A stretch of 64,000 nucleotides of DNA, from the NCBI GenBank assembly GCA_977020255.1, contig CDROCS010000253.1, positions 496,001 to 560,000 on the forward strand. The letters are read 5' to 3'. Made by a program: the position numbers and the translations under genes. Positions 4,740 through 64,000 of the stretch are shown one piece after another. Below the pieces are notes generated by a model, which saw only the letters and a program-made list of their open reading frames with translations, was not told the DNA's origin and searched no databases. The stretch's first letter is position 1. Every line of letters starts with the position of its first letter. The stretch comes from Obrimoposthia wandeli. Taxonomy: Eukaryota.

Positions 4740-4761
4740 GACAACGCCTTAATTTTTTGTA

Positions 4762-4820
4762 TATACACGTTAGCAATCAAGATGCATGTTTCAGAGTGCA
4801 CTTTGAATGGTAACGGGTAT
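4762..4820. repeat. 59-bp internally deleted ERIC-like element (type-2 termini)
   Basis: TATACACGTTAGCAATCAAGATGCATGTTTCAGAGTGC joined directly to ACTTTGAATGGTAACGGGTAT. These are the two ends of the 264-bp element at 48765-49028. Confidence 0.85.
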
Positions 4821-4952
4821 CGATAATCAGATAACTTGATAAGTTAAAGCAGTCACCCGATTTAAACAAGGATTAAACAAGCGTTAAACAAGGAAAAGTA
4901 ACGTATTTATAGCCGCTACTTTTTCTTGTGCATTAGCAAGTACATTAACAAA

Positions 4953-6386: not shown

Positions 6387-6462
6387 GACTAATCTCCGTA
6401 ATTCACTGACAAAACAAATATAAAAGAGCAATACCGTAATCAATATCGATTAAAGTATAGCT

Positions 6463-6728
6463 TATACCAAGCGGACTAATTTATTGATCACTTAGCGAGA
6501 ATTAAAAGGTTTAGAGGCAAGGCATTGATTGAAGAGAATAGTTATTCTATTGTCAAAATCAATAACGCCGCATGTAATCCTTTTAAACTCGTCCTTCGGA
6601 AGCTCCTTAGCAAACTGATAACATCACCAAATGAATAAAATATAGACTAACTATGTTTAAATCATTTTGCTTGTTTTAAGCTCGCTAATGTAGTTCTAAG
6701 CTGACTAATAAATTAATCCGTTTGGTAT
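6463..6728. mobile_element. ERIC-like MITE, copy A (type-3 termini, about 266 bp)
   Basis: TIRs ATACCAAGCGGACTAATTTATT / AATAAATTAATCCGTTTGGTAT (22 bp, 2 mismatches). The core GGCAAGGCATTGATTGAAGAGAATAGTTATTC is shared with the copies at 22268, 35949 and 41599. Confidence 0.85.
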
Positions 6729-6884
6729 TATTAACAATAATATCTTAATAATTGCGAAGCAAGCATAATTTTTAATGATTCCGTCTATGATTAAGAGTAC
6801 TATAGCGCCTTTTTTTTACCCCTAGTTTTTAATGCTTAGTATTTGCCTTAATAAGCACTAAGCAATCGTTGGAGAAGTAAGTTT

Positions 6885-9812
6885 ATGCCATTTCAGGTAG
6901 GTCAGCGTTGGATCAGTGACAGTGAATCAGATCAAGGATTGGGTACAGTAACTGGCGTTGAAAATCGCTTTGTTAATATTATTTTCACAGCAACCGGTGA
7001 AGCCCGTAAATACGCTAAAGAAAATGCGCCATTAACGCGTGTTATCTTTAATAAAGATGACCTTATCCCTAGCCACGAAGGCTGGTCGTTAAAAGTAACT
7101 TCACATAGTGAAGCTCATGGCATAATCAACTACGAAGGCATACGCCAAGATACCAATGAGCAAGTCATCCTAAAAGAAGTGATGATAGACCACTTTATTA
7201 AATTCAATAAACCTCACGACCGCTTACTCAATAGCCAAGTTGACCGTTTAGACTGGTTTCGCTTGCGAAAAGATTGCTTACAACATCAATATCAACAACA
7301 GCAATCTGATTTAACCGGTTTGACCGGTGGTCGAGTTAGCTTAATACCACACCAACTGTATATTGCCGATGAAGTCGGTAATCGCTTTGCTCCTAGAGTT
7401 TTACTGGCCGATGAAGTTGGCTTAGGAAAAACCATTGAAGCGGGTTTAATCATCCATCAGCAATTGGTCACTGGCCGTGCAAAAAGAATTCTGATCATAG
7501 TACCCGAGTCTTTAATGCATCAATGGTTGGTTGAAATGCTACGCCGTTTTAACCTTAACTTTAGTATTTTTGATAATGAGCGTTGTGTTGAAACTAGCCA
7601 AGATAATTATATTGATGGCAAAAAAGCTAATCCCTTTAGTTCAGAACAATTAGTACTGGTTAACCTAGGTTTTATCACTAATAATCCACAATGGTATGAC
7701 GCATTACTTAGTGAAGATTGGGATTTAATGGTGGTCGATGAGGCGCACCATCTAAACTGGCAACAAGATAAACCCAGTATTGAATACCAGTGTATTGAAC
7801 AACTCGCGCAAGTCATCCCAGGTGTTTTATTATTAACTGCCACACCAGATCAATTAGGTCATGAAAGTCACTTTGCCCGTTTACGTTTGCTTGATGCTGA
7901 CCGTTTTTATGATTATCAAAAATTCACTGAAGAAGAATCCCATTATAGCGAAGTTGCTGATGCTGCCAATGCGTTAGTCGAAGGTAACAAACTTTCTAGT
8001 GAGCAAGAAAAGACACTCTCTGATTTATTAAAAGAAACTGATATCAGCGTGCAACTGACTGAGTTAAATCAAACAGACAGCGAGCAATCAGTAAAAGTAC
8101 GCCAAGGTTTATTAAAACAGTTACTCGACAGACACGGTACTGGTCGTATCTTGTTTAGAAACTCTCGCAATACTATTAAAGGCTTCCCTGCCCGTCAAGT
8201 AGTACCCGCTGCGTTAGCTATGCCTGAGCAATATCAAGAAAACATTAATGAGTTTATGCTCAGTGACTGCCCTGAAGCCTTAGCGAAATCAAAGCAGGCT
8301 AAATATATTTTCACCCCAGAAATGCTGCACGGCTTAAATCAACAAAATGACACTTGGACTGACTTTGATCCTAGAGTTGATTATTTAATTGATCTATTAC
8401 AGTCACTTAAAAAAGAAAAAGTATTAGTCATTTGTGCAAATGCTCAAACAGCGATTGATTTAGAAGCTGTTCTTCGTATTAAAGAAGGTATTCGCAGCGC
8501 TGTTTTCCATGAGGGTCTATCAATATTTGAACGCGATAAGGCTGCCGCTTATTTTGCCCAAGACGAAGATAGTGCTCAACTATTGCTGTGTTCTGAGATT
8601 GGTAGTGAAGGACGTAATTTTCAATTTGCTCATCATCTAGTGCTTTTTGATTTACCCAGCAACCCTGATTTATTAGAGCAACGCATTGGTCGCTTAGACA
8701 GAATTGGCCAAACAGAGATAATCCGTATTCATGTGCCTTACTTTGAAGATTCGGCCCAGCAGTTATTATTTGATTGGTACCAACAAGGTATGCAAGCATT
8801 TGAGCATACCTGTATTACCGGTCGAGTGGTTTTTGAAACTTTTGGTGAACAACTACTCGCATTAGCGTTAACTTGCCAACAGCAATCAGCTGAAGCAGAG
8901 TCGCTGATTAGTAGCAGTTGGCAGAAACATTTAACCATTAAAGCTGAATTAGAATCTGGCCGAGATAAGTTATTAGAGCTGAACTCATCTGGCCAAGGAC
9001 GTGCCCATGAATTAGTTGAGAAAATACAGCAAGCTGATAATGACATAGGCTTACCTCAATTTATGTTTCAGGCACTCGATGTATTCGGTGTGCAGCAAGA
9101 TGATAAAGCGGATAATGCCATCGCCTTGAATCAAAGCGAGCATATGCTTAATAGTAACTTCCCTTGTTTACCAGAAGACGGCACCACTGTTACTTTTGAT
9201 AGAGAGACAGCCTTAGTTAATGAGAATTATCAATTATTAACTTGGGATCATCCTATGGTTCGTGGTGTGATGGATTTGGTCCTCAGCGATGAAATTGGTA
9301 ATGCCAGTATTGGTTTATTAAAAAATGAAGCACTACCGGTAGGCACCTTCTTCCTTGAATGCTTATTTACCGTTGAAGCTACCGCCCCTGCTCATTTACA
9401 ACTAGGTCGTTACTTACCTACTACGCCAATTCGTATCTTGGTAGACAAAAATGGCAATAATTTAGCAGACAAAGTCAGTGAAAAAGTACTTGATAAACAA
9501 TTGTCACCTGTTAAAAAACAAATGGCCTTACAACTTATCAAAGCACTTAAGACACAAATAGCGCCTTTGGTTGCTAAAGCAGAAGCACATGGCGCGCAGC
9601 ATATTATTGCAATCCAAGAGAAGTCGTTAACAGCAATGCAAAATAAACTCTCGTTAGAGCAACAAAGATTAACAGCCTTAAAAGCTATTAACCCAAGTGT
9701 GCGCCAAGAAGAGATTGATTTTATTAGTCAGCAACAAGATGAATTAAGCCACTATATTGATAAAGCGCAATTGACCTTTGAAGCAATTCGCATGATAGTG
9801 GTTACGCACTAA
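6885..9812 (+). CDS. rapA: RNA polymerase-associated SWI2/SNF2 ATPase RapA (HepA)
   Basis: MPFQVGQRWISDSE N-terminus; LLADEVGLGKTIEAG, VDEAHH and EQRIGRLDRIGQ motifs; 975 aa. Confidence 0.97.
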   Translation: MPFQVGQRWISDSESDQGLGTVTGVENRFVNIIFTATGEARKYAKENAPLTRVIFNKDDLIPSHEGWSLKVTSHSEAHGIINYEGIRQDTNEQVILKEVMIDHFIKFNKPHDRLLNSQVDRLDWFRLRKDCLQHQYQQQQSDLTGLTGGRVSLIPHQLYIADEVGNRFAPRVLLADEVGLGKTIEAGLIIHQQLVTGRAKRILIIVPESLMHQWLVEMLRRFNLNFSIFDNERCVETSQDNYIDGKKANPFSSEQLVLVNLGFITNNPQWYDALLSEDWDLMVVDEAHHLNWQQDKPSIEYQCIEQLAQVIPGVLLLTATPDQLGHESHFARLRLLDADRFYDYQKFTEEESHYSEVADAANALVEGNKLSSEQEKTLSDLLKETDISVQLTELNQTDSEQSVKVRQGLLKQLLDRHGTGRILFRNSRNTIKGFPARQVVPAALAMPEQYQENINEFMLSDCPEALAKSKQAKYIFTPEMLHGLNQQNDTWTDFDPRVDYLIDLLQSLKKEKVLVICANAQTAIDLEAVLRIKEGIRSAVFHEGLSIFERDKAAAYFAQDEDSAQLLLCSEIGSEGRNFQFAHHLVLFDLPSNPDLLEQRIGRLDRIGQTEIIRIHVPYFEDSAQQLLFDWYQQGMQAFEHTCITGRVVFETFGEQLLALALTCQQQSAEAESLISSSWQKHLTIKAELESGRDKLLELNSSGQGRAHELVEKIQQADNDIGLPQFMFQALDVFGVQQDDKADNAIALNQSEHMLNSNFPCLPEDGTTVTFDRETALVNENYQLLTWDHPMVRGVMDLVLSDEIGNASIGLLKNEALPVGTFFLECLFTVEATAPAHLQLGRYLPTTPIRILVDKNGNNLADKVSEKVLDKQLSPVKKQMALQLIKALKTQIAPLVAKAEAHGAQHIIAIQEKSLTAMQNKLSLEQQRLTALKAINPSVRQEEIDFISQQQDELSHYIDKAQLTFEAIRMIVVTH

Positions 9813-22267: not shown

Positions 22268-22530
22268 ATACCAAGTCCATTAAGTTAGTTCCCACTCAGA
22301 GCTTGCCAGCGGTTTGAGAACAAATAGAATTTTTTGCATATAGTCACTCTATATGAAAGAAATTCTATGCGGTTATCGAGTCGCTGGAAAGCTCCCGAAG
22401 GGCGAGTTTAAAAGGCTTACATGCTGCGTTATTGATTTTGATAAGGGAAAAACCATTATCTACAATCAATGCCTTGCCTCTAAGCCTTTTAACTCTCGCT
22501 GAGTGGGAAGAAACTTATTGGAATTGGTAT
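22268..22530. mobile_element. ERIC-like MITE, copy B (type-3 termini, 263 bp)
   Basis: 32-bp TIRs ATACCAAGTCCATTAAGTTAGTTCCCACTCAG / CTGAGTGGGAAGAAACTTATTGGAATTGGTAT (4 mismatches). The 3' half matches the reverse complement of 6490-6604. Confidence 0.88.
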
Positions 22531-22584
22531 AAGTAATATTACTGACAAAGCTATAAATACATTACACTTTGGTCATTTAGATAA

Positions 22585-35948: not shown

Positions 35949-36296
35949 TATACCCGCTCCACTTGAAGATGCTCATTTCAGGAAACCTGAGCGAATCATA
36001 ATCAAGGCACATTTTTTGTTAAGGGTTATTCCCTTAAAAACAAATGTAACGACGAATATGATTTGCTCCGTTTTCCCCAAAGGGCTGGTTTATAAAAGGC
36101 TCAGAGCTCCCCGTAGGGCTGGTTTAGAAACTCTTTCTGCTGCGTTATTGATTTCGACAATAACGCTACATGGATGTAGCTTATTAGAGAATGCAGGAGC
36201 ATATTCTCCTGAATAACTATTCTCTTCAATCAATGCCTTGCCTAAAGACGTTTCTAATTCCAGCTGAATCCTGCATCTTCAAGTGGCTTGGGTATA
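35949..36296. mobile_element. ERIC-like MITE, copy C (type-1 termini, 348 bp, composite)
   Basis: TIRs TATACCCGCTCCACTTGAAGATGC / GCATCTTCAAGTGGCTTGGGTATA. Two inverted core modules, a duplicated CCCCnnAGGGCTGGTTTA motif and nested small hairpins. Confidence 0.9.
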
Positions 36297-40101: not shown

Positions 40102-41547
40102 TTACTGCGTACCACCAATAGTCATTTCATCAATTTTAAGCGTAGGTTGACCAACCCCAACCGGTATACTTTGACCATCTTTACCACACACGCCAACACC
40201 GGCATCAAATTTTAAATCGTTACCGACCATACTGATCCGCTTCATAGCTTCAGGTCCATTACCTATTAACGTAGCACCTTTTACCGGTGACGTTATTTTA
40301 CCATCTTCAATCAAATAGGCCTCTGAACTGGTAAAAACAAACTTACCCGACGTAATATCTACCTGCCCACCAGCAAAATTTGGTGCATAAATACCTTTTT
40401 TAACCGACTTAATAATATCCTCAGGACTAGACTCTCCTGCTAACATATAAGTATTAGTCATTCGTGGCATAGGTAAATGGGCATATGATTCGCGTCTACC
40501 ATTACCTGTTGGTTTCACGCCCATTAAGCCAGCATTATGCTTATCTTGCATGTAGCCTTTTAAGATACCCTTTTCGATTAATACGTTATATTGTCCAGGG
40601 GTGCCTTCATCATCAATAGAGATTGAACCACGACGATCAGCCAACGTGCCATCATCAACAATAGTACAAAGTTCAGAAGTAACCTGTTGGCCAACTTTAC
40701 CTGAGAATGCTGAAGAGCCTTTACGGTTAAAGTCTCCTTCTAAACCATGCCCTACCGCTTCATGCAGTAATACACCTGGCCAACCTGCTCCTAATACAAC
40801 AGGGTAAGTACCTGCTGGCGCTTCAATGGCAACTAAGTTAACTAAAGCTTGTCTAACTGATTCTTCAGCATAAGCGAGGTAACGTGGTTTGTTATCACCC
40901 GCTGCAACTTCAAAGAAGTAACTATAATCTGTACGAGCACCGCCACCAGCACTGGCACGTTCACGCTTACCATTTTCTTCAACTAATACCGAACAGTTTA
41001 AGCGAACTAATGGACGAATATCGGTACCAAAGGTGCCATCACTAGCACTCACTAAAATAGTTTCATAAACACCTGATATGCTAGCAATAACCTGCTTAAC
41101 ACGGCTATCAACTTGGCGAGCATGTGCTTCAATTTGATGTAATAAGTCAATTTTTTTCTCTTGCGTTAAACTACCAAGCGGCTCAACTGATTGATAAACT
41201 TCAATGGGTGATTGACGAGTAAACGCTTTAACGGTTGCACCAGTACCGCTATCTGCAATACCTTTTGCCGCATCGGCCGCCTGCTGAAGTGCTTCAGGAG
41301 TAATATCATCAGAATAAGCAAAGCCTGTTTTTTCGCCTGAAATAGCTCTTACACCAACACCTCGTTCAATGTTATATGAACCTTCTTTGACAATGCCATC
41401 TTCTAAAACCCAGGTTTCATGCTGACTCGCTTGAAAATAAAAATCAGCATAATCAACTTTTCGTCCCATCATACTGTTTAAGGTTTTTGATAACATTTCT
41501 TCATCAATATGACTATCACTTAATAAGGATTTTTCAACTATATTCAT
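40102..41547 (-). CDS. tldD: Metalloprotease TldD
   Basis: [11 protein letters not shown] (HExxxH), DDEG, PRMTNT, CGKDGQ. Confidence 0.97.
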
Positions 41548-41598
41548 TAGGTCTTAGCTCTACTTCTATGTTCTTTAATTATAATCAAATTGCTGCTA

Positions 41599-41775
41599 TA
41601 TACCCAAGCCACTTGAAGCTGTGTGTTTCAGGGGTCCCCATAGGGCTGGTTTAGAAACGCTTTATGCTACGTTATTAATTTTGAGAAGGGAGTAACCATT
41701 CTCTTCAATCAATGCCTTGCCTAAAGGCGTTTCTAATTACAGCTGAAACCTGTATCTTCATATGGTTTGGGTATA
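41599..41775. mobile_element. ERIC-like MITE, copy D (type-1 termini, 177 bp, single module)
   Basis: TATACCCAAGCCACTTGAAG...CTTCATATGGTTTGGGTATA; overlaps the last codons of the nitrilase gene. Confidence 0.9.
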
Positions 41776-52001: not shown

Positions 52002-55000
52002 TTAGCGAGAGATTTCACGTTGATAAATAATACGATCATTACCGCGGTATATACCAAATGTGGCAACAGCACGAGGGTTGTCATTATACAATCCATCTAC
52101 TCCCTCATCGTCATAGCCCCAATCGTATTTCAACCAATCACTAATGCCATAAATAACCCCAACTTTACCTGTATTAATATTTGTCGGGGAAGTTGTTGGC
52201 GCTGTAAGTACAATACTTCGAGTTTCACCCAAAGGTAACTTATCAGTAAACGCTCCTGACACAGGCTCTTTCACTTCAGTTTTTGTCGGGTCTAAACCTT
52301 CATCCGTTAAAGAAATATTGGTAGAATCATATGTAGTACAAGTATCTATTTCATTCAATACATAACCTTTGTCGGTGTAATAATGAATTGACAATGTTTG
52401 GGGTAAATCTGAAGTATCAGGACCATAGCTATTTTCAAGTTGAGCACGACCAAAGCGTATTTCTTTACTTTCTGGCTTTAACACCCACAAACGATTATTA
52501 TCACTGTCATTATCACTGTCGATAGCCAATACATCATCAGAATCTTTTATATTACTTATCCCTAATTCTATTAGGCTAGGAAAAGGGAAAATTTCTGCAT
52601 TTTGTTCATGAAGATAAACAAAGTTATCATTAACATTAAATGCATAAGTTATAACGCCATTAGCTTCTTCTGGTAAAGTGCCTTCACTTAAGTTAGCAAG
52701 TAACTTAATTGTATCACCTAATAAACCTACTTTATTCGGAGTTGCATCTTCAAGTGGAATGATATATTCGACATCCTCCGCTGAAAACTTAATAAAATCA
52801 CCCGTATAATTCTGTGTAGTAGTACATTTATCACTAGGACAAATAGATGATTTAGCCGTAATTAATAGTTCTGGTTGAAATAAGTGTTCATATTGTAGAG
52901 CACCTTTATTGTCACCTACGCTACTTACTTGCCCCGTATATGCGAATGCCATTTCACTGCTAGGTGAAGTGATATCACAAACAGAAATAATACTACCGTC
53001 GAAACCTGTGCTTAACTCAAAATGATCAGGAATAAAACGTCCTACATAAGGCTCATAACCTTGAACATCACTCGAACCTAAATAAGCACCACTCGTTAAA
53101 TTGGCACTAAAACTAATAATACCCACCTCCGAATATGTCATATCAGTATTGGTGGCTATACCTTGTTCATCACTGCCTCCCGATGAAAAGCTATCAAAAG
53201 TAACGCTAGATAAAGTGCCTAAAACGCCGAAAGTAGGAAGAGTAGATAAATTTGGGAGTACCATACTCGGTGATATTTTTGCTGTTTCAGGCATTTGCTC
53301 ATTGCCGAAGTTCTTTGTAACTTCGTTATCGGACAGGTCTGTATCATTATCAGCTTGCCACTGTACCGCTTTCAATACGGTAGAAAACTCTTCACCTGCC
53401 GCAATAAATTTGATCCCTCCTGCTGTTTCCGCTTTTTGGTTACCAACTACGTTAATAGAAAAAGCAAAAGGTCTAACAACGAACTGATTAGACGTACCAA
53501 GCATATAATTACCACTTGGATCGCCATTTTCATCTGGAATATTATAACGAGCATGAAGCTGAATTTTACCCGCATCAGGATAAGAGAGAATAAACTCAGC
53601 GCTGTTAACCGTATTATCACTAAAATTTAGGCCGACTGGACTGTATGAGAGTACAGCGTTATTATCGAGAGTGATTATATTGGTTGGAGTGCTTAAGTTA
53701 TTTATAGCCACTTGACTGCCCGCACACGCATTAGGATCGACACAAGTAGCCGCCATTTCAATCTCAGTGGTATTAATGAAAGTTGCTTGGCAGGCCCCTG
53801 TGTCAGGATTTTTTTCAATCGCTTGAATCTTCAATGTGTTTGATGGTTTTGCTGATACTTGTGTAGGTATAGGATTAGCTTCTCTATCTTCAAAAAACCT
53901 AAAACCTGTATCAGCAAAAACAATATCGCAAAGGTTAGGACTTCCACCGACACAAACGGTTGCACTAGTTGACGGAATAGTTTCATTTATCACCCCTAAT
54001 GTTAATGTATCTGCAGTCGTTTGACTCAAACTTACCGTTGTACTACCAGTGAAGGTAAGTGCCTCTTTGGTGATACCATCACTCTGAAAGTCCAAAGAAA
54101 CTGACACGGAACTCAGAGGAGAACAAACGCTGTTCGTGCAAGCTTTAATTGTGATAGTTTCGGGTGCGCAGGTTAAGCCATCGCCATTATGCTCAATTTG
54201 ATAGTGATCAATTGCAGGCCCGCCACAAACTCCAAATTGCACCTTACCGTTGAGAGCGCCGTGTTCTAAAATTTCATAACCTGTAGGCGCAGCATTCGTA
54301 CGGATGTCATTGGCAATGGATATTTCTAAATAATCACCGCCGCCACGTTCAAAAAATATCGCCGCTATATCAAAAATAGAATCTTCAGTTAAGGTAAAAG
54401 ATCCGCCCGTATTTGAATTACCCGTTGGTTGTTCATACCTTAATTCATTACTCTCACCTATGGTTGAAAGACCAAATTTGTTGAATACAACCGTATCACC
54501 AAACAGCGTATCCATGATAAAACTAAAACCGTCATCAGCCTCAACATAAATAGTGTAATCACCTGCGGGCAAGCTGAGCGTTCCAGAGGTATGCACTAAA
54601 AAATCTGAACCACCAACCCCCGGATAGGGTAATGTACTTGAAAAATCGTGCCTTGAACCACCAAAGTCTATACGATCAACTGTACTTGAACCACTTGCAG
54701 TAACATTATAGGTGGCATTATCGATAAACCCTGTTGCAGGTGAACCTGCAGTCAGCCACTCAGCATGAATTGCTAGCGCTTCAGTGGTTGTGTTTATCTG
54801 AGTATTGCTACCATTACTATCAATTTTAATACCGACTGCGTTTAGCTGGCCAGGAATGGAATCACATACAGCATCACACTGCACAGGATCACGCATGGTG
54901 CCGTCATAGTTTTTATTAGCTAGTTGGTTGTTATAAATTGTTGATATGCTATCAGCCGTTAATGCGACATCATAAACAAGAAACTCATCTAATGGCGCTC

Positions 55001-56093
55001 TAAAGCCTTGTGGATTACTGCTATTAATACCATCAAAAGAGGTACCAATGAATTTAAGTGTTCCTGAAGGTACTCTAGCGATTGTATCCACTAAACCACC
55101 GTCAATATAAAGTTGTGTTTTACCCACAGAATATACTAACGTTAAGTGATGCCAGTTATTATCTAAAGTGCCAAAAGAGTAACGACCAAGTGTTGGGCCA
55201 GAAAGATTATAAACTCCCCATCTCCAACCATTATCTCTATCAATATAAAGTAAATCTCCACCATTTTGCATAGCCCCTAAAACAAAAGCAGGGTTACCTG
55301 AAGCCGATGTGGGTATTTTAAACCACGTGGATACAGAAAAACTGGCAGGTAGGGGAATAGCCGTTTCAATATGGTGATCTGCATTGGATATATCAGCAAA
55401 CCGTTCAATTTTACCAGCGTTATTGGTATCAACACGACTAAAAGACTGACCAGGGTATCTACCCATTTGATCAATTACATCACCATTTATACCGGTATAA
55501 GCACATTCATCAAAACGGTAATTAGCGATAGGTTGAACTGGCGGTATCGCACCACACATACCATTAAAATCAGCATTAGATATATAATTGGCGTTATAAT
55601 TCACATTAAAGCGATCAGCGAAACCGACAGCAACTGATGCGCCATTAATGGTCGGATTTCCAGATACTGATATTGCGCCCTTAACATATATAATCGCATT
55701 AATAACTGTACTCCCCCCTTTTATTTTCAGGTTACCATCAATCACGATGATAAGGTCCTCAGGGTTACCTGCTTCATTTATTTTGACATTTTTCCAACTA
55801 ACATTTGACCTAAAAAACAAACGAGCTGTTGTTTCTTGGGCTGTTCTTTGACCTACAAAAATTTTACCTTTATTTGGCAGGTTGGAGTTACTATAAAGGT
55901 TGTCACCTCGGGGTAAGGTTGTGTTTGTTGTTAGAGTATTTCCTGAATTATTCGCCGGAAAATTAATTAACTGGTCAGCTACGGGTGTAGATTCACGCCA
56001 GCCAGAAGAAAATACATCTAAGCATGCTGCCGCCTCAACACGGGGAAATAGAAGGAGTATCATTAAAAACGTTAAAACCAAACGTAATAGCAT
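52002..56093 (-). CDS. mshQ: MSHA pilus adhesin MshQ-like (DUF6701) with LamG-like and PA14-like modules
   Basis: 1363 aa exported protein following mshP. C-terminal YVGRFIPDHF, RFGRAQLEN and ATFGIYRGNDRIIYQRE motifs typical of MshQ. Confidence 0.85.
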   Translation of the reverse strand: MLLRLVLTFLMILLLFPRVEAAACLDVFSSGWRESTPVADQLINFPANNSGNTLTTNTTLPRGDNLYSNSNLPNKGKIFVGQRTAQETTARLFFRSNVSWKNVKINEAGNPEDLIIVIDGNLKIKGGSTVINAIIYVKGAISVSGNPTINGASVAVGFADRFNVNYNANYISNADFNGMCGAIPPVQPIANYRFDECAYTGINGDVIDQMGRYPGQSFSRVDTNNAGKIERFADISNADHHIETAIPLPASFSVSTWFKIPTSASGNPAFVLGAMQNGGDLLYIDRDNGWRWGVYNLSGPTLGRYSFGTLDNNWHHLTLVYSVGKTQLYIDGGLVDTIARVPSGTLKFIGTSFDGINSSNPQGFRAPLDEFLVYDVALTADSISTIYNNQLANKNYDGTMRDPVQCDAVCDSIPGQLNAVGIKIDSNGSNTQINTTTEALAIHAEWLTAGSPATGFIDNATYNVTASGSSTVDRIDFGGSRHDFSSTLPYPGVGGSDFLVHTSGTLSLPAGDYTIYVEADDGFSFIMDTLFGDTVVFNKFGLSTIGESNELRYEQPTGNSNTGGSFTLTEDSIFDIAAIFFERGGGDYLEISIANDIRTNAAPTGYEILEHGALNGKVQFGVCGGPAIDHYQIEHNGDGLTCAPETITIKACTNSVCSPLSSVSVSLDFQSDGITKEALTFTGSTTVSLSQTTADTLTLGVINETIPSTSATVCVGGSPNLCDIVFADTGFRFFEDREANPIPTQVSAKPSNTLKIQAIEKNPDTGACQATFINTTEIEMAATCVDPNACAGSQVAINNLSTPTNIITLDNNAVLSYSPVGLNFSDNTVNSAEFILSYPDAGKIQLHARYNIPDENGDPSGNYMLGTSNQFVVRPFAFSINVVGNQKAETAGGIKFIAAGEEFSTVLKAVQWQADNDTDLSDNEVTKNFGNEQMPETAKISPSMVLPNLSTLPTFGVLGTLSSVTFDSFSSGGSDEQGIATNTDMTYSEVGIISFSANLTSGAYLGSSDVQGYEPYVGRFIPDHFELSTGFDGSIISVCDITSPSSEMAFAYTGQVSSVGDNKGALQYEHLFQPELLITAKSSICPSDKCTTTQNYTGDFIKFSAEDVEYIIPLEDATPNKVGLLGDTIKLLANLSEGTLPEEANGVITYAFNVNDNFVYLHEQNAEIFPFPSLIELGISNIKDSDDVLAIDSDNDSDNNRLWVLKPESKEIRFGRAQLENSYGPDTSDLPQTLSIHYYTDKGYVLNEIDTCTTYDSTNISLTDEGLDPTKTEVKEPVSGAFTDKLPLGETRSIVLTAPTTSPTNINTGKVGVIYGISDWLKYDWGYDDEGVDGLYNDNPRAVATFGIYRGNDRIIYQREISR

Positions 56094-56587
56094 TACAAAC
56101 TCCGCGCTTCAACTTGAAGAGTACGGCTGCTATTTACCATATTTTTACTTCCTGCTTCCATTGTGCCACTGCCACATTTACCCGTACTGGTTAACCGGTA
56201 ATATTTCGGGCCACCAGAAGGGTCTGTTGGTTTGGGATAATAATTATCACAAGTTGTCGTAGCTTTACAGTCGTAAAGCCCTGGTATATCGGTTTTAAAA
56301 TCATAGGAGGTCGCGTTACAGACACCTGTAGCGCCATTGAGAGGAAATAGTAATTGTAATTCTGCTTGCATAGCAGAGTTGGCTGCCATATAAGCACGAG
56401 TACCTAACACCTCTTGTGATACTGTTTCACTGCTTGTGGAAATCATGCGCATTAAAACACTGCCTAACAAGGTTAATATAATAATGACAAACAAGGCCAA
56501 AATTAAAGAACTGCCTCGCTGCTTAGAGATGCGAGGTAAGTGGAGCAGTGCTTTATTTTCAGGTAATGGCTGATAATGAATAAACAT
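56093..56587 (-). CDS. mshP: MSHA minor pilin MshP (PilX-like)
   Basis: QRG-SSLILALFVIIIL prepilin-like start, GTRAYMAANSA. Confidence 0.85.
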   Translation of the reverse strand: MFIHYQPLPENKALLHLPRISKQRGSSLILALFVIIILTLLGSVLMRMISTSSETVSQEVLGTRAYMAANSAMQAELQLLFPLNGATGVCNATSYDFKTDIPGLYDCKATTTCDNYYPKPTDPSGGPKYYRLTSTGKCGSGTMEAGSKNMVNSSRTLQVEARSL

Positions 56588-56798
56588 ATTGGCTTTAAGG
56601 CTACAATTTATATGGCAGAAGTTAGTACAAATGTAACGCTAAGCACTTATTTTTGCAATATAAAGCATAACCCCCCCCGTAATTCGGAGCAGTCAGTTAA
56701 GACTAAATGACGGTTGAACAACTGAGGTTTTCCTTACGCTGGCTTCTCTATCAGTATAATTTATAAAGTTAAACAGGTTTTCTCAAAAAATTAATTAC

Positions 56799-57677
56799 CT
56801 AGGGGACATTATTTATATGTACTTCATGGTCAAAAACATAATTTTCATCATCGTTAGTAAATTGCAAATGAATTTGCACAACTGCATTTCGTTTCAGTGA
56901 CGGGGGCTCATAATTAAAAGGGGGATTATCACCGAAATTATTGACCAAGTAACCAGCCATATAATTCCCATTTAAAATGGGATGGCTTTGTAGGCCTCCG
57001 GTAATATCTTCTTTATAACGCATGATAAAACCAGCAGAAGCACAATAACTAACCTGCTCTTTTGTTATGTATAACCGCTGAGTAGGAGAGTCCTCATCAA
57101 CAAGTACATCTTGCGTATTAGATATATTTATTTTCCAAGGCGTTACAGTTGCATCAACGCTCCCTACACTAAATATCTTACCGCTGTCACTGGTGAAATC
57201 GTCATAGATATCTTCATTTTTCAATGGGTAAACAGTGATTAAATCTTTGCAATTTCCACCAGTACCAGCAACAGGACATTGATATGGATCACCCTCACTA
57301 TTGTTAAAGGGAATGACCGAAAAGACTTTAGTGGCTGGCTTTGGTGCAACAGGAATATCGGTATACACGGTGCTCGCAATAATCGGCGTAAATTGAATGC
57401 ATTGTGATGTGTTATCAACTGATAAAATACGAATACTATTGGGTACTGCATTACGTAACTCTCGACTTAGACGTTCAATGACAAAGCGAGCATTACCTAC
57501 AAGTTCGTCGCGATTACTCGCATTTAAGTAAGTTTGTGTTGATAAGGTGATAAAGCCGCTTATGCCAACGGCCATTATGCCCATAATGATAATGACTAAT
57601 ACGAGCTCAATTAGGGTGAAACCTTGGCTGGCTTTTCTATTTATACCGCTAAATTTATTTTTAAAGTAGCCCATCAA
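56799..57677 (-). CDS. mshO: MSHA minor pilin MshO
   Basis: QG-FTLIELVLVI, ERLSRELRNAVPNSIR, C-terminal HEVHINNVP. Confidence 0.9.
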   Translation of the reverse strand: MMGYFKNKFSGINRKASQGFTLIELVLVIIIMGIMAVGISGFITLSTQTYLNASNRDELVGNARFVIERLSRELRNAVPNSIRILSVDNTSQCIQFTPIIASTVYTDIPVAPKPATKVFSVIPFNNSEGDPYQCPVAGTGGNCKDLITVYPLKNEDIYDDFTSDSGKIFSVGSVDATVTPWKINISNTQDVLVDEDSPTQRLYITKEQVSYCASAGFIMRYKEDITGGLQSHPILNGNYMAGYLVNNFGDNPPFNYEPPSLKRNAVVQIHLQFTNDDENYVFDHEVHINNVP

Positions 57678-58228
57678 AAATTAGCCTTATAACTGCTAAA
57701 CTCTATCGCTGTGCCTAACGGTGTAGTAACCGTGACAGTAATACGTTTCGCTAACATATTATCTGATAATTGTAACTCATCCCCTGCGTAGCTCACTTTA
57801 ACAAGAATTTCAAACTGCCTATAACCTTCATCAATATTTTGATCGAGCGCATTTTTCTTCTCGCTATAGTTATTAAAATCATCGACATCATTGTAGTGCT
57901 TACGCTCAGTTTCACCGGGATCAGAGCTGAGATTTAAAGTGCAAGGTAGTGCTCCCGCTTCACCACAACGAAGTAATCCACCTGACATATCTGAATTGTG
58001 ATCAAAAGCACGGCTAGTTATATCGTTCATCAAGCTCTGTGCCAGTTCTGAAGCTTTAATTTGTAGTACATTATCAGCACTTTTTTCTTCTGCTGGCACA
58101 ATTAAGGTACTGACTATGGATAATGAAAGCGTTAGCACAATGATGCCAACAATAAGCTCAATTAAAGTAAAGCCTTGTTGACGCTTAAATTGAGCTTTAA
58201 TTAGGCGATTAAGGGAGATCGAAGACAT
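57674..58228 (-). CDS. mshD: MSHA minor pilin MshD
   Basis: QQG-FTLIELIVGI, YNDVDDFN, C-terminal YKANF. Confidence 0.9.
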   Translation of the reverse strand: MSSISLNRLIKAQFKRQQGFTLIELIVGIIVLTLSLSIVSTLIVPAEEKSADNVLQIKASELAQSLMNDITSRAFDHNSDMSGGLLRCGEAGALPCTLNLSSDPGETERKHYNDVDDFNNYSEKKNALDQNIDEGYRQFEILVKVSYAGDELQLSDNMLAKRITVTVTTPLGTAIEFSSYKANF

Positions 58229-58748
58229 GAATATAACCCTCTTCTTCAATAGAAATGATTAAAGGCTTCTCGCCGGGTCGGATGACATTAATTTCACAGC
58301 CACCAGCACAATCGTAGATGGGACGTCCCATCCAGTCAAAACCTACTTTTACATGATCAGTAAGAATCGCACCACCTTCTTTAACAATATTAAAGGTAAT
58401 TTGATAGCGACTATCAACTAGATGCCCTGTGGCATCAGGAATCCATTTTTCGATGGGGGTAGGAGTAGGGAAAACAATATTATCGCAATTCTTTCTATCA
58501 GGTACACCGTAGCGAGTATAATCATCAGCACCCTCAAAAACAATTTGATGGCAATAATCATCTGTAGTATCTGTTTGCTGCATTGCGCGTTGTTGTGTTA
58601 ACCGTAAAGCTGAAATAAGTTGTGCTCTGTGTGTGTGTGCTTCGTAGCCAGTAGTACCATCAAATTTAGGTGCTACTGACACCGCTATAATAGCGATCAA
58701 AATTATCACTACAATTAATTCTATTAAAGAAAATCCCTTATTATTCAT
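58209..58748 (-). CDS. mshC: MSHA minor pilin MshC
   Basis: KG-FSLIELIVVI, LRLTQQRAM, C-terminal IEEEGYIH. Confidence 0.85.
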   Translation of the reverse strand: MNNKGFSLIELIVVIILIAIIAVSVAPKFDGTTGYEAHTHRAQLISALRLTQQRAMQQTDTTDDYCHQIVFEGADDYTRYGVPDRKNCDNIVFPTPTPIEKWIPDATGHLVDSRYQITFNIVKEGGAILTDHVKVGFDWMGRPIYDCAGGCEINVIRPGEKPLIISIEEEGYIHVFDLP

Positions 58749-58886
58749 TTGTTTTCTCTATTGTGGCTGACAAAAATTTCAAGAAAAACGCCCCAATTAT
58801 CACCTACATAAATATAGTTATTATCTTACAACACTTTAGCGATAGATTGTATACTCAACCATCGCATTTACCACAACGAGTTCATT

Positions 58887-60620
58887 TTGTCTTTATTACC
58901 CTACTTTAAATTATTTCTTGTTCTGTATTTTCTTATTGGCATGCATATTATTTTAGATACACCTGGCGGTGTTGGCTTGTATTATTCCTATAATGTTATT
59001 GCTTGGATAATTACCGCTATTCTTATTGCGCTTGGTTTGTGGCAAGTCACTTTGAATAAAAAAATATACTATAGCAAGATGTTACTTTGGTTAGCTTTAG
59101 GGTGTACTTTTTTAGTCATACCCGCTTTTTATCCCTTTGATTTTACTGACCATGCCATTCCTCGAATTTTAGCCTTAGTGGGCGGCTTTCTTTTTCTATT
59201 TTCACTCTATCAATTTAACCTTTCAAAAATAGAAGCATTACAATTACTCACTCTAATTCTCATCGCAGTGGTTATTGAAGCATGTTTTGGTTTGGTGCAG
59301 TTTTTTATATTCGAAGCAGGTGACTGGGGCGGATATATTGTGGGTAGCAGCAGACCACATGGTGTTTTCATTCAGCCTAACGTTATGGCTAGTTTTATGG
59401 CAACTGGTTTAGCCATTGCATTATTCCTCTCCGTTAAAACCAAGATTATTCAAAATAAACTATGCTTTAATTGCCTAATAGCTTTCAGCCTATTTGTTAC
59501 TAGCTTTTTACTCATATTACTGCAGTCTCGTACCGGTTTTGTCGGGGCATTCGCTGTAATTTTGCTTATATCACCTTATTTATATCAAAAGAACAAAAAG
59601 CAATTATTCACTAACCTAGTTATTATCACAATAGCAGTACTCAGTGCGATAATAAGCCTTGAGCAGTCAGCAACGCCCATTCGTGGCCAGCAAGTGTATG
59701 AAAATGTTGGATCTCGTGATGCTTTATTTATTGTCAGTGTTGATATGATTAAAGAAAAACCATTACTTGGCTACGGCTATGGTGGTTTTGAGCGTAGTTT
59801 CATCGATCACTTCAACCAATATGCAGTAAAAAATCCTGAGATAGGTAATACTATTACCGGATTATCTCATCCACATAATGAGGTACTTTTCTGGGTAGTT
59901 GAAGGAGGTATTATTGCCTTATTGGCTTTTATCTTTTTCACTATTGGTTATATTTGTACTTGGCGTAAAATACCGCTGAGTAAGGGACTAGCATTACTTG
60001 GTTTAGTATTACCTATACTATTACATAGCCAATTAGAATTTCCTTTTTATAGCTCCGTCAGTCATTGGCTAGTGTTTCTCATTATGCTTTGGTTACTAGA
60101 TCATTATTCCTTAAATAATGATGCCCTAGCTGAAGATAAAGATCATAACTTTATCAACTGTCCTCAGACTTTCTTATTACGCTTTTTTGCAATATTAATC
60201 CCAAGTATTTTTATCCCTTTTTTAGTAACCACTTTACACACCGCAAACATTCTTGTTGAACACGAAAAAAATCCTAAAAAATCATTAGCACGATTCAGTG
60301 ACATTATTAACCCAATAGCATGGCAGAGTCGCTTAGATGCGGCTGTTTATGCACATATTCTTATTTCTGGCTTACACAGTCAGGATATAGATAAACTAGA
60401 GAGCTACCTAACATGGGTACTTAAGCGCATTAAGCATAAACCTAGAGAGGACCTTTACGTTCATGCTTTATTAGTACTAAAGACACTGCAGAGGAACGAG
60501 CAATATCAACTATTATTACTTGAAGCAAAACAAACTTATCCGCAAAAAAGTAACTGGCAAGATAGTATTTTACAACCCGATAACATTACCACTTTAGATG
60601 GAATGAAGAGTAGTAATTAA
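58887..60620 (+). CDS. O-antigen ligase/PglL-type O-oligosaccharyltransferase (Wzy_C plus C-terminal extension)
   Basis: About 12 TM segments; GVFIQPNVMASF, LQSRTG, PLLGYGYGGF, HPHNEVLFWVVEGG, LHSQLEFPFY; long soluble C-terminal domain. TTG start is uncertain. Confidence 0.85.
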   Translation: MSLLPYFKLFLVLYFLIGMHIILDTPGGVGLYYSYNVIAWIITAILIALGLWQVTLNKKIYYSKMLLWLALGCTFLVIPAFYPFDFTDHAIPRILALVGGFLFLFSLYQFNLSKIEALQLLTLILIAVVIEACFGLVQFFIFEAGDWGGYIVGSSRPHGVFIQPNVMASFMATGLAIALFLSVKTKIIQNKLCFNCLIAFSLFVTSFLLILLQSRTGFVGAFAVILLISPYLYQKNKKQLFTNLVIITIAVLSAIISLEQSATPIRGQQVYENVGSRDALFIVSVDMIKEKPLLGYGYGGFERSFIDHFNQYAVKNPEIGNTITGLSHPHNEVLFWVVEGGIIALLAFIFFTIGYICTWRKIPLSKGLALLGLVLPILLHSQLEFPFYSSVSHWLVFLIMLWLLDHYSLNNDALAEDKDHNFINCPQTFLLRFFAILIPSIFIPFLVTTLHTANILVEHEKNPKKSLARFSDIINPIAWQSRLDAAVYAHILISGLHSQDIDKLESYLTWVLKRIKHKPREDLYVHALLVLKTLQRNEQYQLLLLEAKQTYPQKSNWQDSILQPDNITTLDGMKSSN

Positions 60621-60797
60621 GCCATTTGAAGGTGCAGGATTCAGCTGGAATTATAAACGCCTTTAAGTAAGACATTGATTGAAAATAATGGTTATTCAGG
60701 AGCACATTCTCCTGAATGACCCTTAATAAAAAAATGCGCCTTGATTATGAATTACTCAGACTTCCTGAAACGAGCATCTTCAAGTGGAGCGGGTATA
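60619..60797. mobile_element. ERIC-like MITE, copy G (type-1 termini, left end eroded)
   Basis: Matches the reverse complement of copy C at both ends (AAGCCATTTGAAGGTGCAGGATTCAGCTGGAATT... and ...GAGCATCTTCAAGTGGAGCGGGTATA) with a large internal deletion. Confidence 0.88.
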
Positions 60798-60852
60798 AGG
60801 CCTTTATCAACCAGGCCATTGAGGAAATCTGATGGGTATAAAAAACAGACAC

Positions 60853-60878
60853 AAAAAAGCCGAGATTATCTCGGCTTT
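60853..60878 (-). terminator. Intrinsic terminator after mshA
   Basis: Minus strand AAAGCCGAGAT-A-ATCTCGGCTTTTTT. Confidence 0.85.
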
Positions 60879-60912
60879 AAGTAAAGAACTATCCCGAAGG
60901 ATTGGCTAAGAA

Positions 60913-61389
60913 TTAACAGTCGTCGGTGTTACTGCTAATTTCAGGCTTATTATGTCTATTATCTGTTGCTTCATAAGTCGCTACACATTCTGCTGGTGTC
61001 GCCGCTTTACTATGGGTAAAAGATGCGGCTGCAGCAGATGAAACACGGATAAAGTCACCGCCATTACCACTAAGTGAATCATTAATTTGCATCAACAAAT
61101 GAATCGAATTACCATCAGGGTAACTCTCTTTAAATGTAATAGCTATACCAGCGATGCTAATAGTGCCATCAACAACACCTGCAACTAATGCTTTCGCATG
61201 CGCCATATCAGCTGCAGAGTGAAGAGAACCTTCTACCGCTTGCACTACTGATTTTTTAGCATCACCCGTTAAATCAATAAATTTAGGTGCAGCTGTTACC
61301 GCTAAAATACCCAAAATAACGATTACTACGACCAATTCAATTAAGGTAAATCCTTTTTGGCTTGCTTTAATATTCATACTACTTTTCAT
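60913..61389 (-). CDS. mshA: MSHA major pilin
   Basis: QKG-FTLIELVVVIVILGILAVTAAPKF, C-terminal Cys pair, own strong terminator. Confidence 0.9.
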   Translation of the reverse strand: MKSSMNIKASQKGFTLIELVVVIVILGILAVTAAPKFIDLTGDAKKSVVQAVEGSLHSAADMAHAKALVAGVVDGTISIAGIAITFKESYPDGNSIHLLMQINDSLSGNGGDFIRVSSAAAASFTHSKAATPAECVATYEATDNRHNKPEISSNTDDC

Positions 61390-61455
61390 GCTTCTTCCTC
61401 AATTTACGAACGAATTTAATTAAAATAATTTAGACCATGTTTACTTAGACAAGGT

Positions 61456-62121
61456 TTACGATTTATCATTTATATAAATAATCACCGAGCTATTTGCAGG
61501 CTGGTAACTAAAACTATTACCTACTTTAGTTAAGTCTGATGGTGCGATATAAGCCCCACCACTATCACGTGCTAACGTTTCTTTTAAGTGATAATGACAC
61601 AAAGTAGATGAGTCGCTACCAGAAACATTGGCTAGATATCGAAAACTACCATCAGTATTGATCTCTGCAACGTTACTGGCAAGTAACGGCGGTTGTTGAA
61701 ATAAACTATTCCATACGCTCATACAAGCAGCTACCGTCATACTTTTATTATTATTAATGCCAGCACTACTATTAGTGCCAACAATATAACCTGGGCTAAT
61801 GGTTGGCGAAGTTGAACTATCGTCACTGGTTAAATATACGATAGTGCCATCATAATTAACCATATTAATACCAGCAATATCTTTGGGACGCGCCTCGGCT
61901 TCCCATTGTGAACGCGCTAATGATACGCCTGTCGCAAAGCCGCCTGCCATACCTTCAATATTTGCCTGTTTTGCTTGTTCAGTTAAATCGACAAACTTAG
62001 GAATAGCGGTAGCCGCCAAAAAACCTAAAATTACGACAACTATTACCAGCTCAATTAAGGTAAAACCCCTCTGGTCATTACTGTTGCGAACAGTGTTGCT
62101 GTGCATATTGCTTTGGATCAT
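61456..62121 (-). CDS. mshB: MSHA minor pilin MshB
   Basis: QRG-FTLIELVIVVVILGFLAATAIPKF, EGMAGGFATGV. Confidence 0.88.
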   Translation of the reverse strand: MIQSNMHSNTVRNSNDQRGFTLIELVIVVVILGFLAATAIPKFVDLTEQAKQANIEGMAGGFATGVSLARSQWEAEARPKDIAGINMVNYDGTIVYLTSDDSSTSPTISPGYIVGTNSSAGINNNKSMTVAACMSVWNSLFQQPPLLASNVAEINTDGSFRYLANVSGSDSSTLCHYHLKETLARDSGGAYIAPSDLTKVGNSFSYQPANSSVIIYINDKS

Positions 62122-62329
62122 TGAGATAACCTTGTTATATGAAACTACACTTTAACTTAATAATGCTACGTGTTAGTTCTAAATGTAAACCTTTAACTGG
62201 CCTAGCCGTGAATATTAACATTATGATTCAGGGCTATCCATATTTCAACGTAGAATAAATTTAATTACTTGTATTAGCATAATAAATTATTATTTACACT
62301 AAAGAAAACCTTACTCTACCCGACGTAAA

Positions 62330-62821
62330 TTAATTAACTTGTTTTACTTTACCTGTGTCACTACGATAATCAAAATATTGCCCATTAGCAAGGCTATAAC
62401 GACATAAACGACCGTTTTTAATAGCATTATTCTGAATTTCAATTGCTATTACTCTTGATTTTACCACCTGTAGTGGCATGGCTAATGTTTGTTGCCAAAT
62501 TTGATGGCAAGCCAAACTGGCATGCTCATTATCAACCCAACCCATATTGTTCACATGAATAAATTCTTTTACATCACTATTTAATCGATTTAACACTACG
62601 GTATTCGGCTGTTTGTCCATAAGCCATTGCCCGTGTATTACGTTAACTTTACTGGTAAAGCTTTGTGCTAAGCCTACAAAGGCGGTATTCGTTATTTTTT
62701 CTTGCTGGCTAAAAAAAACATCGACTAACAGCTTCATCATTATAGCAACTATTACCACAACGATTAAAAATTCAATAATTGAACGTTGCTTTTTCTCAGC
62801 GTACTTACGTGCTTTTTCCAT
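62330..62821 (-). CDS. mshF: MSHA biogenesis protein MshF-like
   Basis: Pilin-like hydrophobic segment, IHGQWLMDKQP, CHQIWQQ; lies between mshG and mshB. Start set at MEKARK. Confidence 0.7.
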   Translation of the reverse strand: MEKARKYAEKKQRSIIEFLIVVVIVAIMMKLLVDVFFSQQEKITNTAFVGLAQSFTSKVNVIHGQWLMDKQPNTVVLNRLNSDVKEFIHVNNMGWVDNEHASLACHQIWQQTLAMPLQVVKSRVIAIEIQNNAIKNGRLCRYSLANGQYFDYRSDTGKVKQVN

Positions 62822-62832
62822 GAGTTTTGCTA

Positions 62833-64000
62833 TTAACCTTGCATAGCCGAGGCCATATCCCACATAGGAGTAAATATACCTAATGCTAACACGAGTACCA
62901 TAACAGCAACGACGACTAAGAGCAGCGGCTCAATTCTTGCGGTTAGTGTTGCCAAATCATAATCAACTTCTCGCTCGTAATAATCCCCCACCTCAGTAAG
63001 CAATTCATCAACTCGGCCAGTTTCTTCGCCTACAGCCACCATCTGCAAGACTAAAGGCGTAAATAAGGCACTGGCTACAGCAGAGCGCAATAAACTTTCT
63101 CCACTTTCGATACCTTGACGCATGGCGGATATTTTTTTCTGCATGTAACTATTATCGACCGCCTCAGCCACCAAGGTTAACCCCGTAGTCATAGGTACGC
63201 CCGCTTTTAATACGATGGCAAAACTATGAGAGAAACGCGCTAATATTGAGCGTTCGATAATACTGCCAATAATAGGGATTTTTATCTTACGTCTATCCCA
63301 CTGGTATCGCCCTTTCTTTGTTTTTATAGATTGGTTGATCATAAAAAATACAAACATAACGCCAAGCAACATATAAGGCCAGTAATGTATAAACAAGTTA
63401 GAGCTCGCAATAATAAATCGCGTAGCAAATGGTAACTCAGCCCCTAAGCGAGAAAACATATCGGCAAAGGTTGGGATGACAAAGATATTTAAAATGACTA
63501 TCGCTGCAGTTATGGCAATGAGTACCATACTAGGATAACGTAATGCAGCTTTAATGCGTTTTCGGGTGTCTAATTCACGTTCAAGATAAGTAGTTAATTT
63601 TAAAAAAGCTTGATCTAATTGTCCGGTGTTTTCACCCACATGCACTAAAGAAACAAATAGATGGTCAAAAATCTTAGGGTGATTATTGAGTGCTGAAGAA
63701 AACGTATAACCTCCTTCAAGCTGCTTTCCTATATCCGTTAATGCTTTTTTCAGCGCGATTGAATTCGCCGATTCAACCATGCCATTAATTGCTCGTAATA
63801 TCGGCACACCAGAGCGCATTAAAGCATACATTTGTCGACAAAAAACGATCAGTTCTTCTAGTGAAACTCGACCATTATTGAGTAATTCAAAGACATCAAT
63901 ACTAGCAGCATTATTGCCTTTTATCGCTGCAACAATAGAGATGGGGGTAATACCCTTTTTAAATAACTTTTCCGCGGCAACATCTGCATTGGCAGCATCA
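62833..64000 (-). CDS. mshG: MSHA platform protein MshG (PilC/GspF family), 5' end outside the window
   Basis: The frame stays open to the window edge (DAANADVAAEKLFKKGITPI...). FCRQMYALMRSGVP, GENTGQLD, ALRYP, VGEETG. Confidence 0.95.
   Translation of the reverse strand, partial: DAANADVAAEKLFKKGITPISIVAAIKGNNAASIDVFELLNNGRVSLEELIVFCRQMYALMRSGVPILRAINGMVESANSIALKKALTDIGKQLEGGYTFSSALNNHPKIFDHLFVSLVHVGENTGQLDQAFLKLTTYLERELDTRKRIKAALRYPSMVLIAITAAIVILNIFVIPTFADMFSRLGAELPFATRFIIASSNLFIHYWPYMLLGVMFVFFMINQSIKTKKGRYQWDRRKIKIPIIGSIIERSILARFSHSFAIVLKAGVPMTTGLTLVAEAVDNSYMQKKISAMRQGIESGESLLRSAVASALFTPLVLQMVAVGEETGRVDELLTEVGDYYEREVDYDLATLTARIEPLLLVVVAVMVLVLALGIFTPMWDMASAMQG

Follow-up and report, generated by a model that had tools for sequence, protein, structure and literature searches.

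A PglL-family oligosaccharyltransferase gene between mshA and mshC of a Colwellia-like MSHA pilus cluster, and its association with the major pilin allele

Why should a cluster for mannose-sensitive hemagglutinin (MSHA) pili harbor, directly beside its major pilin gene and on the strand opposite to all its structural genes, an enzyme of the kind that transfers whole glycans? The question is posed by a stretch of 64,000 nucleotides from contig CDROCS010000253.1 (positions 496,001 to 560,000; hereafter the window, in whose own coordinates positions are given), where a PglL-family O-oligosaccharyltransferase gene (OTase) of 577 codons with a TTG start (58887..60620, + strand) lies between the major pilin gene mshA (60913..61389, - strand) and the minor pilin gene mshC (58209..58748, - strand), the first gene of an mshC-D-O-P-Q block. 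The best protein matches are to Colwellia species at 75-85% identity, and the window is from a Colwellia-like gammaproteobacterium. MSHA pili function in surface attachment and initiation of biofilms in Vibrio, Shewanella, and many marine bacteria, and serve as phage receptors. From sequence comparisons we consider it probable (roughly 0.6) that the OTase is a PglL-class O-oligosaccharyltransferase which moves a lipid-linked glycan made elsewhere to an internal Ser or Thr of MshA before pilus assembly. What is new here is the allele-linked presence/absence system that the OTase forms in msh clusters.

The initial annotation had described a 577-residue ORF (open reading frame) that splits mshA from mshC on the strand opposite to the msh genes, is convergent with mshA and divergent from mshC-D-O, carries Wzy_C, QPN, and HSQLEFP motifs together with a long C-terminal domain, and was associated with PglL more than with the O-antigen ligase WaaL. 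Position and orientation are borne out by the ORF list and strands, and the family call by Pfam scores, signature residues, size, and context. Specifically, the predicted protein scores 87.7 bits for Wzy_C_2 (residues 369-555), 74.2 bits for Wzy_C (cutoff 31.7 bits), and 27.2 bits for PglL_A (residues 159-181, cutoff 25 bits), all above the gathering scores, and the same three-domain set is found in most of the 120 homologues listed. The PglL_A model was derived from features that PglL has and WaaL lacks (Schulz et al. 2013, PMC3643930). The motifs RPHG (156-159), QPN (163-165), SRTG (214-217), GYGYGGF (295-301), HPHNE (328-332), EGG (339-341), and HSQLEFP (380-386) could all be located, and are invariant or near-invariant in an alignment of 50 homologues with 26-80% identity. 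The residues reported to be specific for PglL (Q178, N180, G316, G318, H400, E404, and P406 in Neisseria numbering; PMC3643930) correspond, by motif and spacing rather than by direct alignment, to OTase Q163, N165, G295, G297, H380, E384, and P386, which are 96-100% kept; those common to PglL and WaaL (R224, R298, P313, and H349; PMC3643930) correspond in the same way to R215, R277, P292, and H328. Signature positions are retained in 48-50 of the 50 homologues with the exception of R215 (R in 40, K in 9); R277 and H330 are invariant, and H328 is found in 49.

Size points in the same direction: PglL and PglS are about 520-620 residues long with a large C-terminal domain, and TfpO and TfpM 420-470 residues (PMC9829042), so that an OTase of 577 residues with a Wzy_C_2 domain falls into the PglL/PglS class. 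We rejected the TfpO/PilO (TfpM) class for the OTase on account of its length, its Wzy_C_2 domain, and its convergence with mshA. Taken together, these features make it very probable that the OTase is a protein O-oligosaccharyltransferase of some kind. The family call is not new, because at NCBI the orthologues already go by "PglL family O-oligosaccharyltransferase"; a search of NCBIfam returned no model matching the OTase itself.

The OTase is predicted to have about 13 transmembrane helices followed by a helical C-terminal domain, and both the TTG start and the first 18 N-terminal residues are kept in aligned orthologues. An AlphaFold model built on the 50-sequence alignment (pLDDT 91.2, pTM 0.92) shows residues 429-572 as an all-helical domain, in agreement with the long C-terminal domain claimed initially. 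In a fold search of the PDB the sole clear match was the WaaL ligase 7tpg (probability 1.00, TM 0.63 on the target), as expected, since 7tpg was the only Wzy_C-type structure that the search returned; the 7tpg chain, of 403 residues, contains nothing that corresponds to the helical domain 429-572. A PDB sequence search with the OTase found nothing, WaaL having come from the fold search only. Comparison with orthologues gives a ratio of nonsynonymous to synonymous substitution rates (dN/dS) of about 0.07-0.12 with dS near saturation, which places the OTase under strong purifying selection. Since its longest homopolymer is A7 and the gene lacks phase-variable tracts, we rejected phase variation.

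Is the enzyme tied to the pilin beside which it is encoded? A sample of msh clusters that is unbiased in this respect is provided by metagenome contigs fetched via MshG and not via the OTase, among which 43 loci were long enough. The OTase is present between mshA and the next pilin in 15 of the 43 and absent from 28, and clusters with an MshG at least 90% identical to that of the window include examples of either state. Loci with the OTase (OT+) mostly encode a short-type MshA of 139-156 mature residues with the C-terminal pattern T-(Y/F)-x-H...C.A.Y...KP.I.S....C; loci without it mostly encode a longer MshA with unrelated C-terminal domains. OTase presence changes 2 times on a tree of the MshA globular domain as against 8 times on a DNA tree of the flanking mshG, where at least 6 of the 8 changes are forced by well-supported branches; thus the OTase moves with one MshA allele clade rather than with the flanking DNA. 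The mshG tree offers 6 independent pairs with contrasting OTase presence; on average, 5.9 of these show a change of MshA type in the same direction (sign test, p = 0.03), and the raw table of OTase by MshA type (13/3/3/25) gives a Fisher p of 4.5e-6, uncorrected for relatedness among loci. This co-variation with the MshA allele supports a functional coupling of enzyme and pilin, so far as comparative data can speak to function; the survey of msh clusters that the initial annotation had called for thereby favors a pilin-directed role.

The slot between mshA and the next pilin is conserved over considerable distances. A scan for OTase homologues, taking one genome per species, returned 80 loci. 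In 19 of 19 Colwelliaceae genome loci (Colwellia, one Thalassotalea, and several metagenome-assembled genomes; 42-80% identity) the OTase separates mshA from the next pilin gene and is on the opposite strand, and the same slot is occupied in 15 metagenome contigs, in P0123 (20 contigs), and in P0126 (37% identity); the P0121 OTase is identical to that of locus L018. The linkage to msh is therefore not unique, and reaches further lineages down to 37% identity. In a protein tree all msh-embedded OTases form a single clade (SH-aLRT 100), and its sister clade consists of Thalassotalea and Thalassomonas OTases located beside pilA or pilBCD. At one of these sister loci (L047) pilA is convergent with the OTase, 53 nt downstream, and at two others (L042 and L030) the order zapD, pilD, pilC, pilB, pilA is found within 6 kb of it. 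A search with the Thalassomonas OTase for a pil-linked paralogue in Colwellia recovered only Thalassotalea-type matches and the msh-embedded Colwellia genes.

More distant homologues have other neighbors. Those of Vibrio are 33-35% identical (34% over 543 residues, E = 6e-103) and lie in a uvrA-OTase-aminotransferase context, with mshH (GAPES4-GGDEF-EAL) about 6 kb and mshJ about 9.6 kb away. Locus L162 (CP028897.1) has a Vibrio-like neighborhood, uvrA-ssb-mshH, with two tandem PglL-like genes at 4149-7785, the first of which is split into a 357-residue ORF (PglL_A and Wzy_C) and a 261-residue ORF (Wzy_C_2), suggesting a frameshifted copy. Aeromonas homologues follow yjbEFGH, and the Tolumonas homologue is found among sugar genes.

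The Colwelliaceae loci also vary around the OTase. In 10 of the 19 genome loci (L004, L005, L009, L010, L012, L013, and L016-L019) the interval from the OTase to mshC contains an extra major-pilin-like gene, some 170-230 nt upstream of where the OTase starts; the first 30 residues of the encoded pilin are nearly identical to those of MshA and its C-terminal domain is of the long type. Two tandem major-pilin-like genes are common in loci without the OTase as well. Across the 19 loci the mshC-D-O-P-Q block comes in two versions (57-75% versus 33-49% identity to the window) but the OTase (72-80%) and mshG (87-94%) keep a steady identity, and this contrast gives the region the appearance of a recombination mosaic in which a breakpoint lies close to the OTase.

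How might such an enzyme act? By analogy with its family, the donor would be an undecaprenyl-diphosphate-linked glycan from a pathway for O-antigen or capsule whose genes lie elsewhere in the genome; before MshA leaves its anchorage in the inner membrane, the glycan would be transferred en bloc, on the periplasmic face, to a Ser or Thr in its globular domain; and the MSHA fibre, once assembled, would be coated with glycan. Since it has a promoter-like block of its own (described below) and lies on the opposite strand, the OTase can be expressed independently of the pilus genes. In natural Colwelliaceae populations the OTase and one short-type MshA allele are gained and lost as one cassette, which is the pattern expected of a pilin-specific accessory gene under diversifying selection. 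More tentatively, and at somewhat less than even odds, we suggest that the OTase is specific for its pilin allele, that the mshA-OTase cassette is swappable and kept polymorphic by phages or grazers that target the pilus, and that the MSHA pili of many marine Colwelliaceae are O-glycosylated. Evasion of phages through MSHA glycosylation, as the initial annotation envisaged and as the analogy with Pseudomonas aeruginosa suggests (bioRxiv 10.1101/150227), would be compatible with the presence/absence polymorphism and with the high diversity of mshA alleles.

The proposed acceptor is the short-type MshA of the window, a 158-residue precursor (145 residues when mature) identified by its N_methyl motif, its place after mshB, alignment, and modeling. 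Its only cysteines, C122 and C145, are predicted to form a disulfide. A model of the mature protein (pLDDT 88.9) has a long N-terminal helix and a small beta-sheet domain with exposed, variable Ser/Thr/Ala/Pro-rich stretches: residues 91-100 (DSLSGNGGDF), where confidence in the model is lowest and orthologues differ by indels; residues 104-109 (SSAAAA); residues 114-121 (SKAATPAE); and the C122-C145 loop, which holds S139 and S140, the matching Ser being missing from a minority of OT+ alleles. The last residue of MshA and of its orthologues is Cys, or else a single N, S, or D that follows the Cys; the lone C-terminal Ser, in L015, is not conserved. An MshA that ends in Cys excludes a C-terminal acceptor in the style of TfpO, and an internal site is to be expected; given the modeled surface, MshA is a plausible acceptor for the OTase.

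We wish to stress that several observations weigh against an MshA-directed role. The OTase lies on the strand opposite to mshA, unlike the co-transcribed pilA-tfpO pair. PglL of Vibrio cholerae, the nearest characterised relative, acts on a broad spectrum of proteins, and its identified targets include no MSHA proteins (PMC6901666). The association with pilin type has exceptions both ways, with long-type MshA in 3 OT+ metagenome loci and in genome locus L004, and short-type-like MshA in 3 loci without the OTase; and because mshA and the OTase are adjacent, hitch-hiking alone would yield the same co-variation. Nor did the alignment reveal any Ser/Thr that is both invariant in OT+ MshA and absent from pilins without the OTase: T118, and the Ser six positions ahead of the C-terminal Cys, are common in OT+ alleles without being universal there, and some pilins from loci that lack the OTase have them as well; thus the acceptor site cannot be named from sequence.

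Could the OTase then be a general, broad-spectrum O-oligosaccharyltransferase like the PglLs of Neisseria and V. cholerae, in the msh cluster for historical reasons and with MshA as at most one of many substrates? Its PglL-class size and domain set would suit such an enzyme, as would the breadth of the nearest characterised relatives (PMC6901666, PMC9829042), a location on the opposite strand with a putative promoter that would free it from the pilus genes, and the Aeromonas, Tolumonas, and Vibrio homologues, which are not beside pilins. A gene that is present or absent among very close relatives, however, and that tracks the MshA allele but not the genomic background speaks against a general function, as do the sister paralogues, which adjoin a different pilus locus; we regard this explanation, the main rival, as rather unlikely.

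An enzyme acting on lipopolysaccharide (LPS) or polysaccharide instead of protein, whether WaaL or another Wzy_C lipid-glycan enzyme, is brought to mind by the Wzy_C domain, by 7tpg as the only clear structural match, and by the JGI labels of relatives ("O-antigen polymerase" or "O-antigen ligase"), but becomes very improbable, and the WaaL class was rejected, in view of an above-threshold PglL_A match to a motif absent from WaaL (PMC3643930), the Wzy_C_2 domain, the length of 577 residues compared with about 400 for WaaL, and its place in a pilus operon, where the 25 kb inspected on one side contain neither LPS nor sugar genes. It is very unlikely that the gene is a functionless passenger, brought in by mobile DNA and tolerated in the msh cluster: a miniature inverted-repeat transposable element (MITE) does abut its stop codon and its presence does vary between strains, but the reading frame is intact with all catalytic residues kept and selection on it is strongly purifying, the slot is retained down to 37-42% identity, and the MITE is found in only some loci, the spacer between mshA and the OTase being as short as 55-106 nt in others.

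The OTase can be compared with several known systems. VC0393 (PglL_Vc) has been shown to O-glycosylate proteins (PMC6901666); its gene lies upstream of the V. cholerae msh operon, and MSHA components were speculated to be among its targets (Vorkapic et al. 2019, PMC6901666). The neighborhood reported for VC0393 matches that in other Vibrio species, where uvrA-pglL lies about 6 kb from mshH. PglL_Vc resembles the OTase in Pfam architecture, size, and msh linkage, and the Vibrio orthologues are 34% identical over their full length; however, PglL_Vc is encoded outside the msh operon, appears to be fixed in the genus, and is broad-spectrum, whereas the gene for the Colwellia OTase, flanked by mshA and mshC, is present in some strains only and goes with the pilin allele.

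In that last respect the OTase is closer to TfpO/PilO of Pseudomonas aeruginosa group I and Acinetobacter, which is encoded beside the major pilin gene and travels with one pilin allele group (bioRxiv 10.1101/150227; PMC9829042). TfpO uses O-antigen units made elsewhere, and the glycosylation protects against pilus-specific phages (bioRxiv 10.1101/150227; PMC9829042). Adjacency to the major pilin gene and association with one allele group are thus shared, but TfpO, at 440-470 residues, lacks a large C-terminal domain, is co-transcribed downstream of pilA, and modifies a C-terminal Ser/Thr. PglS is dedicated to a single pilin-like protein, ComP, which is encoded next to it and has its acceptor Ser in a disulfide-flanked loop (PMC9829042, PMC3643930). 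Compared by description only, Neisseria PglL and Acinetobacter PglS share with the OTase the size class and the Wzy_C and PglL motifs, and have internal pilin acceptors; they differ in acting on PilE or ComP and not on MSHA and in gene orientation, and the presence of the OTase, unlike theirs, is strain-variable. WaaL 7tpg has in common with the OTase the transmembrane fold and the Arg and His of the Wzy_C loop, but is without PglL_A and the C-terminal domain, is encoded in an LPS locus, and transfers to lipid A-core.

The initial annotation was not aware of any description of a glycosylation and phage-evasion module for MSHA pili. Neither a glycosylated MSHA pilin nor an OTase lying within an msh operon came up in the literature searched, which has only the speculation for V. 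cholerae, and a recent cryo-EM study of Shewanella MshA mentions glycosylation for flagellin only (PMC13334000). As an idea, however, MSHA glycosylation is less novel than stated, being preceded by that speculation (PMC6901666) and by the many PglLs encoded next to pilins, as are 21 of 31 PglL homologues (PMC3643930). Were glycosylation of MshA by the OTase to be true, this would be the first glycosylated MSHA pilus, and an independent parallel, in a PglL-class enzyme, to the pilin-group/tfpO system of P. aeruginosa. Closely related clusters with and without the OTase, each with the matching pilin allele, constitute a natural test system, allowing direct tests both of glycosylation of the MSHA fibre and of the pilin specificity of a PglL-class enzyme; PglL-class enzymes with defined short acceptor sequences are moreover of practical interest for glycoconjugates. 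What limits the value of the finding is that OTases linked to pilins are familiar and that a PglL-family annotation of the gene already exists.

The spacers on either side of the OTase differ in content. In the 138-bp spacer that separates it from the divergent mshC (58749-58886), the initial annotation placed a new promoter for mshC. This was not confirmed: the promoter scan found no site on the - strand in this spacer, with an overall yield no greater than that from shuffled sequence, and the conserved block located there, TTACAA-N18-TATACT (58826..58855, + strand), faces the OTase. This putative promoter is near-invariant in the 8 loci compared and stands at a constant distance (about 32 nt) before the TTG start, but the remainder of the spacer is variable in the same loci. 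A search of RNA-seq runs turned up none that contains the region. In one metagenome relative (L083:9095-9560) a MITE copy of the family described next lies between the OTase promoter block and mshC.

On the other side, mshA was rightly thought to have its own terminator: a terminator scan and an inverted repeat both identify an intrinsic terminator on the - strand (60878-60856), a 10-pair hairpin AAAGCCGAGAT A ATCTCGGCTTT and a T-run, TTTGTG. The MITE too is where it was said to start. Repeat matches delimit a MITE-like repeat at 60613..60797, assigned to neither strand, with ends TATACCC...GGGTATA; its degraded left end, with a boundary at about 60613/60619, overlaps the TAA stop codon of the OTase. 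Inverted and direct matches at 6456-6686, 22308-22538, 35949-36296, and 41545-41775 bring the family to 5 copies in 64 kb, the copy at 35949-36296 being longer at about 350 nt. Contigs assembled from public sequencing runs break at both ends of the 60.6-kb MITE, where summed depth is 2565-4920 versus about 35 in the flanks (a 70-140x excess), indicating that the repeat family is very abundant in the genome or the community. The same contigs reveal near-identical strains in other samples. In run X2, over window positions 57600-62200, contigs of lower depth connect 60880 directly with 61190, so that the MshA globular domain is left out, and 58176 with 58810, leaving out mshC; the flanks are short, and these joins hint only weakly at co-occurring strains with replaced pilin alleles.

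The msh structural genes occupy the - strand from 52002 to 64000 in the order mshG, mshF, mshB, mshA, OTase (on the + strand), mshC, mshD, mshO, mshP, and mshQ, followed by mreB, the msh names being those we presume from the gene order and sizes in V. cholerae. From the ORF list and Pfam, and likewise on the - strand, mshB (61456..62121) encodes a pilin and is kept with or without the OTase; mshD lies at 57674-58249, mshO at 56799-57677, mshP (PilX_N) at 56093-56587, and mshQ (DUF6701 and Laminin_G_3) at 52002-56093. A truncated MshG was considered and rejected, mshG simply continuing past the end of the window. That this is an MSHA-type cluster is indicated by the gene order of the window together with the secretin and ATPase of the syntenic locus L001 (Colwellia sp. 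75C3), where the secretin scores above the cutoff of the MshL equivalog TIGR02519 (300.7 against 250.2 bits) and the ATPase has an MshE-type cyclic di-GMP-binding motif; MshEN domains were also found in L161, L163, and L164. In a few relatives with MshG about 80% identical (L115, L120, L123, L136, and L137) the msh cluster ends after mshA or mshB, without mshC-Q, and unrelated genes including a purL-like gene come next. The absence of adjacent sugar-pathway genes, noted at the outset, extends over 25 kb beyond mshQ, the one side examined, where we found mreBCD, maf, rng, yhdP, a nitrilase gene, tldD, pmbA, mgtE, and rapZ. MshQ itself (1363 residues) has a concanavalin-A-like lectin domain, Laminin_G_3, at residues 247-384, N-terminal to DUF6701.

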